This document shows, piece by piece, positions 26,765 to 32,118 of a stretch of 64,000 nucleotides of DNA (the stretch's first letter is position 1; the number at the start of each line of letters is the position of its first letter). Position numbers and translations under genes: made by a program. The stretch spans positions 2,294,001 to 2,358,000 of the forward strand of contig CATNEN010000037.1 of the NCBI GenBank assembly GCA_950097015.1. The letters are read 5' to 3'. The notes under the pieces were generated by a model. The model had not been told where the DNA came from and did no database searches. It saw only the letters and a list, made by a program, of their open reading frames with translations. The stretch is from Macrostomum hystrix (Eukaryota > Animalia > Platyhelminthes).

Positions 26765-27508
26765 TTAATAACTCTTAAGAACTGCTTGAGATGTTCTTGG
26801 CCTCTTTCGCCCAGAACATACAACATAGAAGATGACCTCGTCCTGTAGACGTTCGGCAGTTGAGCGATTGAAATAGCTGAACAGCTTTAAAAGGTCAGTG
26901 GTTTCGATTGGCTCGTATCGCTTCACACTTCCACCTGAAGCCTGAAAGTCCCGGACTTTCATTCGCAGCATACGATTCGCGCTGCCGAACTCAGGCGAGT
27001 CGATAATGTTGATCTCGCGTTTTACAATGTAGTTGAAAAAACGCTGTATCCCAGCCCTGATGCAGACAAGGCTCGATGCAGAATACAGTCCGCCGTCTGG
27101 CTTGGCCAATCGAAAATAGTACAGACGAAGGTACTCATTTAGCTTCTCCTGTTTCACCGTCTGCAGATCATCTAGTTGGTAGCCGAGAGAGTTCATGTAG
27201 TCCGCAAACTTGTGTCCATGTAGGAGCATTTGATCTCGCGTGGTTCTTGGAAGAGACTCCAACTCCATTTTGTCAATTGCACTCATGTCGGTTCTTTCAG
27301 TTGACACGCTCGCACTCTCCGGCAGTTCGGGCAGCTCTACTCCTGCGATGCTGTCGTCATTCTTGCTAAAGTCGGTGATGAACTGGATAAAGCGCTCTAG
27401 TTCTTTATCCTTACTATGGTCTTCACGACTCAATTCGCTTATCACTTCCAGTTGCGTTGTTGACACACCATCAAGGGAGTCAACAGGCAAATGACTCCAG
27501 TTTATCAT
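26765..27508 (-). mobile_element. Crypton-type (DUF3504-associated) tyrosine-recombinase relic, truncated and frameshifted at the start of the catalytic domain
   Basis: LNEYLRLYYFRLAKPDGGLYSASSLVCIRAGIQRFF...IIDSPEFGSANRML...YEPIETTDL resembles the N-terminal region of animal Crypton/DUF3504 proteins as I recall it. In the +1 frame near 26820 the sequence reads VLGERGQEHLKQ, matching the G-x-R-G-x-E-x-L catalytic-Arg motif. Confidence 0.7.
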
Positions 27509-28015
27509 CGTTGTAATCTCAAATTTATAATCAGTAGCGAAGGCACAGACTAGTTAGTCTCTTTCTAGCTTCTTTCTTGTCTCTTTCCACCGAAGGAAAG
27601 GCTTATGAAGGGGAACAACTATACAACGTTGTCTATGGTAAAAAGTAGACATGCATTGCCAATTGTCACACACATTATGAGTGGGCTTGATCAATAGGAC
27701 AATAATATTGTCTGTATGGTTTCATCATAGACAACTAACCATTGTCAGTTTCTGTTTGGTTTGCTTCTATGAAAACTATAGGATTATTGATGATAACATT
27801 CCATTGTATTGTTATGACAGTAGTCCATTTTTGTAAATAAATAGAAGTCTACAAGCAAGATTTTCATTTTTAGTATATAAGAAGACTTCAGTATACTTCA
27901 AGTATTTCTGCGATTAAAAGAAGCGAAAGACTCATTTATAATTGGTTTATTTTTGTTCGCAATAGACCAGTAAACTAACTGAAGCCGCCTCTGTCAATTA
28001 TCTTGGATTTGGCCG

Positions 28016-28927
28016 CTATTCTCCATGCAGCAACTTCGACTGCTGCCGGTTTGTTCGGGAGATTGCCTGAAAATAGCGCGTGGGAATAGTGAATTGTGAA
28101 TAATTATTCTAATTACCCATTAGAAGCCGGTGTACCCAGCAGACCGGGGTGGGTGTACAGGTTGGGTGGGTTTAACTACTGGCTCACACCCTGTCCCAGC
28201 CACCAGACACCCGCTGTCCCACACCCTGTCCCAGCCACCAGTCACCCGCTGTCCCACACCCTGTCCCAGCCACCAGACACCCGCTGTCCCACACCCTGTC
28301 CCAGCCACCAGACACCCGCAGTTTCACACCCAGCCGCACCTGGCCAATCCTAGGCGGGGTGGAGGCCCTGGGCCGCAGCCGGTACTCGATGACCTGGTCA
28401 TAGAAGCGGTCGAGTTTGACAGCATTGGTGGTGCCGGCGCTGAGGGACCGGGTGTGCACGCAGCTGAGGAGGATCTCCGGGCAGCCGATGCGCACCGCCG
28501 CTTCGCCGCCGTTCTGCCGCCTCGCTAGCGCGTCCGGCTTGCAGAGGTCGCTTTTAGCCCCGATGACTAGGACTGGCGGCGAATCGGCGCCCAGACTGCA
28601 CTCGTGCAGCCAGCGGGTCAGGTTCAACTCCGTCTTTCTGTTGGTGAGGTCGTGCACCAATAGGACGCCGTGTACGCCGTGGTAGAACACTGCCCGACTG
28701 TTCTTGTGCATCGGGTAGCCGCCGATGTCCCAAAACTCGAGGAAGAACAACCGCTCGGCCTGGCCGGTCAGCTCGGAGGCGTAGGCGTGCAGGCCGACCT
28801 GCAGGGAGCAGCCGACAGTCCAGGCCGGATTGGTCAGCTCGCTGTGATTGGTCAGCAGGTGTACAAGTGAAGACTTGCCAACGCCGGAGTCGCCAAGCAC
28901 TAAGATTTTTACTCGCAGAGTGTCCTC
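28016..28927 (-). CDS. RABL3: Rab-like protein 3; exons 28927-28340 and 28066-28016; no genomic ATG found
   Basis: EDTLRVKILVLGDSGVGKSSLVHLL...PAWTVGCS...FWDIGG...RAVFY..VHGVLLVHDLTNRK matches RABL3. Donor CAG|GTGCGG at 28340 and acceptor TTTTCAG| at 28067 give the tail AISRTNRQQSKLLHGE*. Confidence 0.93.
28185..28325. repeat. Minisatellite, 35-bp unit, in the RABL3 intron
   Basis: CACACCCTGTCCCAGCCACCAGACACCCGCTGTCC, about 4 copies. Confidence 0.95.
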
Positions 28928-28965
28928 CTGAGGGCCAATTAATTAATTGGCTCAATTAGTACCCC
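28928..28965 (-). promoter_or_regulatory. Unpaired 3' splice acceptor (putative trans-splice site) of RABL3
   Basis: Minus strand TACTAAT (branch-like)...GGCCCTCAG|GAG; phase 0 with the ORF; no upstream ATG-bearing exon seen. Confidence 0.7.
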
Positions 28966-29039
28966 AAGATGGCATCACCTGTTTAATTACCTCAATTACA
29001 GGTCCTATATTGAATTACCTGTTTAATTACCTTAATTAC

Positions 29040-29730
29040 AGTTCCTAGATTGCATCACCTAATTAACTACCCTAACTAAAGGCCCGAGATTGCATCACCT
29101 AATTAACTACCCTAACTACAGATCCTAGATTGCATCACCTGTTTAACTACCCTAACTACAGGTCCTAGATTGCATCACCTGTTTAACTACCCTAACTACA
29201 GGTCCTAGATTGCATCACCTGTTTAACTACCCTAACTACAGGTCCTAGATTGCACCACCTGTTTAACTACCCTAACTAGAGGTCCTAGATTGCACCACCT
29301 GTTTAACTACCCTAACTACAGGTCCTAGATTGCATCACCTGTTTAACTACCCTAACTACAGGTCCTAGATTGCACCACCTGTTTAACTACCCTAACTACA
29401 GGTCCTAGATTGCATCACCTGTTTAACTACCCTAACTACAGGTCCTAGATTGCATCACCTGTTTAACTACCCTAACTACAGGTCCTAGATTGCACCACCT
29501 GTTTAACTACCCTAACTACAGGTCCTAGATTGCATCACCTGTTTAACTACCCTAACTACAGGTCCTAGATTGCACCACCTGTTTAACTACCCTAACTACA
29601 GGTCCTAGATTGCATCACCTGTTTAACTACCCTAACTACAGGTCCTAGATTGCACCACCTGTTTAACTACCCTAACTACAGGTCCTAGATTGCACCACCT
29701 GTTTAAACACCTGAATTAAAGGTCCTAGAT
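29040..29730. repeat. Minisatellite, 40-bp unit GATTGCATCACCTGTTTAACTACCCTAACTACAGGTCCTA
   Basis: Visible array in the TMEM223-RABL3 spacer; degenerate copies continue to ~28970. Confidence 0.98.
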
Positions 29731-29992
29731 TTAATCACTTATTTATCACACATTTTATAGACGTTTTTATAGACGAAAAGTAAAAATAAGGCGAGCCAAA
29801 GCGAAATGCGAAAAATCTTGCTATGGAAGCATAATTTTAATTACATTCCTAATTGAGACAGATTCTATTTCCTAGATTTTTCGATGAAATTGCCTAAATT
29901 GCCTAAATTGCCTAATATATAGCGAAATTCTAAGCATACTACTAGAAGTCTTAGTAGATAATAAGGAAAACGCGCCAGAATAACTGTTTATT

Positions 29993-30947
29993 TCAAAGCG
30001 TTGCTAACGATTGTTCGCGAATTCGTTTGAACAGCGACGCAAATACGACCGGCTGTTTAATAAAATGCGAGTCCTTAGCAACGGCTAGCAACCGAGGCCT
30101 AGCCGACGAATTGCCGACAGTCGGCAGCTGCTGCACCAGCAGGTGGTTATCGTACAGAGGCGCCATGTCAATCCAGCGCAGCTTAGAAGCCGAGCTAATC
30201 CGCAGCTGATCCAGTCTAATCCGGCGCGCGCCGGTCAAGGTGGCCACGGCCAGGTGCTGCCCGCCTGGCTCCAGGACCAATCGGCGAACGATGCGCAACG
30301 GATGCACCGCGGTGAACAGGCCGGAGACAGCGGCGACCACGCCGAACATGCCGCAGATGAGTAGGCTAGCCGGGCTGCCCAGACTGCTGCTAGGCAGGTA
30401 CCTGGCTATCCAGGAAGCTCCGCTCTCTTCGACATCGTCGGCGTTGTTGCCGTCATCGCCAGCTTCTTCATAGTCGCCGGACATCAGGCGACGCCGCAGA
30501 TTGGCCTCCTCCAGGCTGGCAACTGACCAGCTGTGCCGCAGGTGGTCAAACAGATTATAGAGGCTCAGCAGGGCGATCAAGCCGCTGAGGCAGTGTCGCC
30601 AGTACAGCTTTCTAAAGCCGGCCTCGAACACAAGGACCGGCTCAGTCGGCGCTAGCACAGCAGCGTGAGCATCGTCGTCATCGTCGGGGCTCCGATTGCG
30701 ACTGGACGACGGCGTAATTTCTTTGACTCTGCGAAGCCGGCTGGTCGCGCAGTCGACGCGCCAGACGGCCCAGATCACTGCCGCCGCCGCCGCCGCCGCC
30801 GCCACCGCTAACGAAGCATAGCTGATTGATCTGTGATTGGCCGTGAGCCCGTAGCAGCAGTCTGTACATCTGCCGCTCGCTGCAGACTAGGCGGCAGCGG
30901 AGGGTCCGGCTGGCGCCGATGACTGAAGCGGCTGCTACGCTGAAGGG
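29993..30947 (-). CDS. TMEM223: TMEM223-like mitochondrial inner-membrane protein, single exon, one apparent +1 frameshift near 30686-30689
   Basis: VLVFEAGFRKLYW, two hydrophobic segments, PLRIVRRLVLEPGGQHLAVATL and C-terminal DSHF..PVVF resemble TMEM223 (VLLFEH...SLRSVRSVVLRAGGQQVTL, recalled). The Arg/Ser/Ala-rich N-terminus lies in the neighbouring frame (ORF 30678..31049, ATG 30869). AATAAA immediately follows the stop (29992-29987). Confidence 0.72.
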
Positions 30948-31049
30948 CTGGAAACAGGTGGATTGAACAAAAACTATCCTATCAAGGATAACATTAGCAA
31001 TAATATTTGCAGCGTACCTGAAGCCAGGGATCCACAAGCACACACACAC

Positions 31050-31053
31050 GCGG

Positions 31054-31090
<37 letters not shown>

Positions 31091-31410
31091 AGTCTTATTT
31101 GCAGGAGGGCTGCGGGCAACATCATTTTGTGACACTGGACCTGCAGCCAGCGAGGAGGCAATTCTGCCTAGTTCGCTGACTCCTGAGTACACACGCACAC
31201 GCTCACACAGGTGTGTACATCTGCCCTGATGACTTTCTCACCCATCGTCAGGCAGTGAACACTCTCACTATGACTTGGAGGTTGGCCCTTTAAGGGTGTA
31301 AATTGCACGACAAGCCCCCAAGCCTTCTCTCCGCGGCTGCGGCCCAAAATGAATGTGGCCTCGGCGCGGAATTGAGCTCAGGGACCTTGGTGCGAGAGGC
31401 AGACACCCTA
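31050..31410 (-). mobile_element. tRNA-derived SINE copy with (ATT)n tail
   Basis: Same core as the other copies. B-box-like GAGCTCAATTCC near 31370-31381. 3' end CCCTCCTGCAAAT followed by an (ATT)n run at 31053-31095. Confidence 0.85.
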
Positions 31411-32118
31411 TCCCTATGTAAGGTAAAATATAGTTTATGCGATAAGGAAAACAAAGATACACTAGCCAAATTTATTTACGCTATAAAGCGCAGAAAAAAA
31501 CGCGAAAACAGGCTAATGCGATTGATTAAAAGTCACAAAAGTAATAGAAAAACATTGATTTATTACAACAATTGATAGAAAATAAATCATAAAAATATGC
31601 AAACAAGCAAAAATTACTTCTTATAAAAGAGGTCAATGTTAATGAAATTCAGACAAAGATGGTGCGGAGTCCAAAAAATGTTTATAAGAGGCTGGTGTAC
31701 ATTCAAGTAGTTTATGATAGGCAATGAGAGAATGTACATTGAGAGTGAGCTTAGTGTTAACAGGAGGCTGGTGTACATTTAAGAAGGTTGCGATTGACTA
31801 AGAGCGAGTGTACATTAGGGTACTGAGGTTCAGGTTTGTTAAAAGCTGATGTACATTCAAGCAGGTTGTGATTGGCTAGGAGCGATTCTACATCGGGGTA
31901 GCGTGGTTCAGGTTTGTTAGAGGCTGATGTACATTCGAACGGGTCGTGATTGGGTAGGAGAGAATGTACATTGGAAGTGAGCTTTGAGTTTGTGGGAGGC
32001 TGATCTACATCGCGAACTTAGGTACACTAAAGTGCGGTGCTGTGATTAGCTAGGAGCAAGGTACATGTCATGGATTTGCGGAATGTGCCACATCGGCTAA
32101 GCTGCAAGGATTCATTAA

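Follow-up and report, generated by a model that had tools for sequence, protein, structure and literature searches.

The RABL3 gene of the flatworm Macrostomum hystrix raises the question of how a conserved gene is translated when its locus appears to encode no start codon. The gene lies in a stretch of genomic DNA of 64,000 nt, referred to here as the window, and is encoded on the minus strand, as are all features of the window described below. An earlier note, made from the sequence alone, had identified the gene as RABL3, had placed the opening of its coding sequence (EDTLRVKI) at 28927, in phase 0 and right after CCCTCAG, and had proposed that the AUG at the end of a spliced leader (SL) supplies the initiator methionine. 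To our knowledge, every flatworm spliced leader reported so far has AUG at its end.

The sequence at the gene's 5′ end is as described in that note. The minus strand reads ...aattggCCCTCAG up to 28928, and the codons GAG GAC ACT CTG CGA GTA AAA ATC follow from 28927. Across the acceptor, the text is ...ccaattaattaattggCCCTCAG/GAG GAC ACT CTG CGA GTA AAA ATC TTA GTG CTT GGC GAC TCC GGC GTT GGC AAG TCT. Exon 1 (28340..28927; 588 nt, 196 codons, phase 0) has GAG (Glu2) as its first codon, contains no ATG ahead of the P-loop GDSGVGKS, and is translated as EDTLRVKILVLGDSGVGKS. Its last codons encode ...PPRIGQ and are followed by GTGCGG, the beginning of a cis intron of 273 nt (28067..28339; GTGCGG...TTTTCAG). 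The coding part of exon 2 (28016..28066; AISRTNRQQSKLLHGE) ends with the stop TAG at 28018-28016, and the C-terminus that it encodes is identical in the RABL3 protein of Macrostomum lignano. An AATAAA polyadenylation signal is present in the 3′ UTR (27946..27951). The sole intron consists mostly of a G-rich tandem repeat (35-bp x 4.2, 28185-28331), which would lengthen the frame of exon 1 by about 50 codons if it were read through. The corresponding intron of M. lignano possesses a different repeat of 23 bp (4607-4935 of L001, one of the three M. lignano loci L001-L003 included in the comparison). An ATG-started ORF of 247 aa (MINWSHLPVDSLDG...; 26765-27508) lies a short way downstream of RABL3 and in the same orientation.

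The identity of the product as RABL3 is supported by structure match, Pfam and orthologue names alike. Among solved structures, the top match is Rab-like protein 3 (6vih, E 1.2e-42, 149 bits), followed by Rab35 with 63 bits, so that the product best matches RABL3 and not other Rabs. Matches to Pfam families include Roc (1.3e-16) and Ras (1.8e-15), and the orthologues found in the databases, with 42-49% identity, are named rab-like protein 3. The G1 (GxxxxGKS) and G3 (DxxG) motifs are intact as GDSGVGKS and WDIGG, and both are invariant in the alignment with orthologues. Similar to the solved RABL3 structures 6vih, 6vii and 6vij, the predicted protein also possesses WTVGCS, WD(I/V)GG, LVHDLTN(R/K)K, and the C-terminal block NAVKL..F.D.VIE. 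With 213 aa it is shorter than RABL3 orthologues, which mostly have 225-250 aa. In an alignment with 11 invertebrate RABL3 sequences, ten of the eleven have M plus five residues ahead of the conserved V(K/R)(I/V), a length that holds for arthropods, annelids and molluscs, and both Macrostomum sequences lack exactly the Met of column 1. The solved chains 6vih, 6vii and 6vij carry tags.

The region upstream of the gene was analysed for a possible source of the start codon. The outron, or intergenic spacer (28935..29992), is AT-rich and lies between the stop of the upstream gene and the acceptor CCCTCAG (28928..28934, AG at 28929-28928). Counted from 28928 to 29992, it comprises 1,065 nt with a GC content of 0.36-0.47, and contains a minisatellite (40-bp x 19.5, 28967-29745) as well as a small 9-bp repeat. 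The nearest upstream in-frame TAA (28943..28945, read as 28945-28943 on the gene strand) is found five codons before the acceptor, and the sequence between this TAA and 28927 contains no ATG. In total three in-frame stops precede the acceptor, and read-in from unspliced RNA is thereby blocked. The start codon might instead be carried by a cis-spliced exon further upstream, the SL form being just one isoform. The scan of 28928-29992 for exons running from ATG to a GT donor in phase 0 found none, as none of the 15 ATGs opens a frame with a GT donor at a codon boundary ahead of its first stop, which argues against such an exon and agrees with the earlier description of about 1 kb of AT-rich spacer plus minisatellite, free of ATG-bearing donor exons. 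The Rfam scan of 27000-31500 (E ≤ 0.1) detected no family, and nothing was found in a scan for promoters and terminators of bacterial type, which is uninformative for a eukaryote.

Tandem arrays are very common in both Macrostomum genomes, with at least seven distinct ones in the 8.8 kb of L001. In both species an array of about 775 bp ends 40-57 nt before the RABL3 acceptor (window 28967-29745; L001 3170-3943). The window array (40 bp x 19.5) and the M. lignano array (30 bp x 25.8) have units that look unrelated except for CAGGTGA, which resembles a 5′ splice site and occurs in every copy (CAG/GTGAG in M. lignano). A kinship of the two minisatellites was considered, but this 7-mer was all that they had in common by eye, at an estimated chance of about 0.15, and it was treated as coincidence. 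The shared placement of the arrays upstream of the acceptor may be a coincidence too.

Sequencing runs revealed how the 5′ end of the transcript is built. Four runs of a single study contained every sampled word of exon 1, with a further run containing part of them, and the assembled contigs of the four runs were compared with the repeat-free stretch 28332-28966 (635 nt). Three runs have one contig each (770-810 nt) matching 28339..28928 without any difference; the fourth has two short internal contigs only, which are uninformative on the 5′ end. At their low end, before 28339, the contigs run on, reverse-complemented, as CAATCTCCCGAACAAACCGGCAGCAGTCGA, which in the genome is found from 28066 on, right after the acceptor CGCTATTTTCAG. 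This loose end is therefore exon 2, and the contigs reach 158-198 nt past the junction of exons 1 and 2. Since the 273-nt intron is absent, the contigs represent processed RNA. The kind of these runs is not on record, and they were taken as RNA because the intron is removed and a leader is attached.

This leader is found at the high end of the contigs, where all three continue past 28928 with the same 22 letters (ATGCAATAAATTGAGTCTTCGC on the plus strand, GCGAAGACTCAATTTATTGCAT on the gene strand). The G at 28928 fits the acceptor AG and the last base of the leader ATG alike. Together with this G, GCGAAGACTCAATTTATTGCAT gives 23 nt on the contigs, which correspond without mismatch to nt 13-35 of the published 35-nt spliced leader of M. 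lignano, CGGTCTCTTACTGCGAAGACTCAATTTATTGCATG, which ends in ATG (PMC8629364). The transcript reads ...AATTTATTGCATG/GAGGACACT, and the mature mRNA ...UUGCAUG/GAG GAC ACU.... A search of the 64-kb window for the leader 23-mer, allowing up to three mismatches, gave 0 matches, so the window holds neither a nearby cis exon with this sequence nor an SL gene. SL-bearing RNA joined at 28927 had been named in the earlier note as a check of its proposal, and the contigs of three runs have the leader 3′ end exactly at this acceptor, with the AUG first and in frame. Regarding the cis-spliced exon, contigs from one study, used here in place of raw reads, show neither rare isoforms nor abundance, and a rare variant would drop out of them. 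Nevertheless, three of three contigs have the leader at the acceptor, and the six public RABL3 records of M. lignano all start at or just after the acceptor, none with Met. Together with the empty exon scan, this makes a start codon in an upstream cis exon very unlikely.

For the analysis of the reading frame, the mRNA was reconstructed by script from the published leader, exon 1 and exon 2. The leader has one ATG, formed by its three final bases, which becomes the earliest AUG of the mRNA (index 32). Reading from it in frame 0 gives 213 codons, MEDTLRVKILVLGDSGVGKS...QAISRTNRQQSKLLHGE, which extend to the TAG of exon 2. The added AUG thus completes RABL3 as had been proposed, giving MEDTLR... 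in frame and with the N-terminal length of ten of the eleven invertebrate orthologues. The second AUG is Met74 in GGYPMHK, 219 nt downstream, past both the P-loop (G1) and WDIGG (G3). Translation might nonetheless begin at Met74 or at a non-AUG codon, the leader AUG being skipped. The context of the leader AUG (UUGCAUGG) is compatible with this, as position -3 is U and not optimal, although +4 is G. However, because of the position of Met74, a start at any other AUG would give a protein devoid of the nucleotide-binding core GDSGVGKS plus WDIGG. The N-terminal EDTLR is moreover kept between species at a dN/dS of 0.05, and it is the leader Met that gives an N-terminal length equal to that of the orthologues. 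We therefore judge a skipped leader AUG to be even less probable than an upstream cis exon. Ribosomal initiation at the leader AUG is what we infer from its position as first AUG, its frame, the conserved N-terminal length and the precedent in schistosomes.

The comparison with M. lignano is in agreement with a start supplied by the leader. The closest database protein is BOX15_Mlig000840g2 of M. lignano, labelled 'partial', with 212 aa and 93% identity, which starts with EDTLRVKI. Its 90% cluster has six members, four from NCBI (all flagged 'partial') and two from UniProt: PAA58111.1, PAA53964.1, PAA76629.1, PAA58096.1, A0A1I8GD81, and A0A1I8HED9. None of the six begins with Met. Their first residue is E, D or T, corresponding to starts at or just past the acceptor, and it varies among the records though the three loci examined are identical there. 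The Met-less records are an annotation artefact of leader trimming. The loci L001-L003 are 99% identical around the 5′ end, where they read ...ccgccggcacag/GAA GAC ACG CTC CGT GTG AAA, and possess an AG acceptor directly ahead of the same Glu codon as in the window. Upstream of the acceptor, the sequences of the window and of M. lignano are unalignable. Exon 1 shows 84.7% DNA identity between the two, with dS 0.79, dN 0.042 and dN/dS 0.053. Judged from the genomic sequences, position and phase of the acceptor are kept between the two species across a dS of 0.79.

These values also bear on the reading of the locus as a pseudogene or a non-coding transcript that has lost its start codon, for which the absence of a genomic ATG could be taken as a sign. 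A dN/dS of 0.053 at a dS of 0.79 indicates strong purifying selection on RABL3, whereas protein identity for the neighbouring gene is just 54%. The gene is in addition expressed, correctly spliced and trans-spliced, and its frame of 213 codons is intact. The pseudogene reading was rejected on the basis of the dN/dS, and we hold it to be the least probable of the three alternatives.

In M. lignano, an in-frame ATG precedes the acceptor by 14 codons, and the stretch between them is free of stops (MSDQFSKTPQPPAQ-EDTLR; L001 3959-4000, and the same in L002 and L003). Unlike in M. hystrix, unprocessed RNA of M. lignano could thus in principle yield an N-terminally extended RABL3. In the window, the in-frame stops prevent such an extended protein from unspliced RNA. 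As no public model of M. lignano starts at the upstream ATG, the records suggest that its transcripts begin at the acceptor as well.

The gene upstream of RABL3 in the window (29993..30805) is co-oriented and weakly similar to TMEM70/186/223. The label TMEM223, given to it in the earlier note, is weak: the gene matches Pfam TMEM70/TMEM186/TMEM223 (E 0.0016) with 18.9 bits, below the cut-off of 22. The gene is syntenic with the one upstream of M. lignano RABL3 (L001 1532-2476), which is its homologue (54% identity, E 7e-62), so the head-to-tail pair is conserved. Ustyantsev and Berezikov (PMC8629364) regard co-oriented genes as operonic when the repeat-subtracted intergenic distance is below 1 kb. 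The adjusted distance is 257 nt in the window (1,065 - 779 - 29) and 465 nt in L001 (1,524 - 285 - 774). As far as the distance goes, the TMEM223-like gene and RABL3 may therefore form an operon with RABL3 as its downstream cistron, and the main conclusion is unaffected by this. The N-terminal part of the upstream gene (GGGGSDLGRLARRLRDQP, corresponding approximately to M. lignano residues 45-60) lies out of frame with the long ORF (30678-31049 versus 29993-30805), and a short intron, a frameshift or an assembly error may be present near 30680-30810. A candidate ATG for this gene is found at about 30869.

Taken together, it is highly probable that the RABL3 pre-mRNA is SL trans-spliced at 28929-28928 and that the leader AUG is the start codon for complete RABL3. 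The RNA structure is seen directly in the contigs: trans-splicing of the pre-mRNA to the SL at this AG sets the leader-terminal AUG directly before GAG (Glu2), in phase 0. A scanning ribosome would start at this AUG, as reported for schistosome mRNAs. As a consequence, full-length RABL3 would be made only from trans-spliced RNA in M. hystrix. For this species the earlier claim that the gene is translatable only after trans-splicing thus holds, the in-frame stops barring read-in from unspliced RNA.

RABL3 represents a clean case, backed by RNA, for Macrostomum, a genus that serves as a model for transgenesis: a conserved gene can have no start codon other than the SL AUG. Its main value is that of a well-documented annotation case. 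Such genes will be truncated or lost by gene callers if these cut off the entire leader or require a genomic ATG, and in the design of transgenes, fusions of promoter and outron for such genes must hold the acceptor in phase. Because the acceptor is found at the same codon in two species about 0.8 dS apart, dependence on the leader AUG might, instead of being a one-off, be a state that selection conserves in a sizeable class of Macrostomum housekeeping genes; to this we give even chances. If so, trans-splicing would act as an obligatory licence for the translation of such genes, and current annotations would systematically file them as 'partial'.

The mechanism itself is already known from schistosomes since 2006, and the case of RABL3 leaves the knowledge of it unchanged. 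Flatworm mRNAs using the 3′-terminal AUG of the SL as initiator Met were described by Cheng, Cohen, Ndegwa and Davis (J Biol Chem 2006), as cited in PMC9851317 and PMC12582326. According to the account of that work in PMC9851317, where such mRNAs are called slORFs, the leader AUG of Schistosoma mansoni is in frame in 28% of the transcripts that are trans-spliced, and over 40 cDNAs require it for translation to begin in the correct frame. At the sequence level, RABL3 shows every feature of an slORF: the mature RNA has, attached at an AG acceptor of the genome, an SL that ends in AUG, this AUG shares its frame with a conserved ORF and gives the N-terminal length of the orthologues, and the gene has no AUG of its own able to give the full protein. 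In Macrostomum, leaders are highly conserved among M. cliftonense, M. hystrix and M. lignano, and their final ATG is likely the start codon (PMC10468722). Our literature search found no paper listing SL-AUG-dependent genes of Macrostomum, and PMC10468722 merely remarks on the final ATG.

RABL3 of M. hystrix can thus be compared with three known systems. It differs from known RABL3 genes in that the locus does not encode its first codon. Compared with SL trans-splicing in M. lignano (Wasik 2015; Wudarski 2017; Ustyantsev and Berezikov 2021), this gene belongs to another species, with exon 1 being 85% identical in DNA at a dS of 0.79, and its acceptor CCTCAG is not a full fit to [T/C]TNCAG, the motif enriched at the SL acceptors of M. 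lignano (PMC8629364). Nevertheless, the two leaders have the same last 23 nt, the acceptor likewise ends in CAG, and RABL3 is a conserved gene, a class reported to be enriched among trans-spliced genes (PMC8629364). The slORFs of Cheng et al. (2006) differ in organism and gene, as the window comes from a free-living macrostomid and the gene is RABL3, known here from its RNA structure. As in those mRNAs, the leader on RABL3 ends in AUG and is joined at an AG acceptor so that this AUG matches the frame of a conserved ORF, and the essential residues are not preceded by any AUG from the gene itself.
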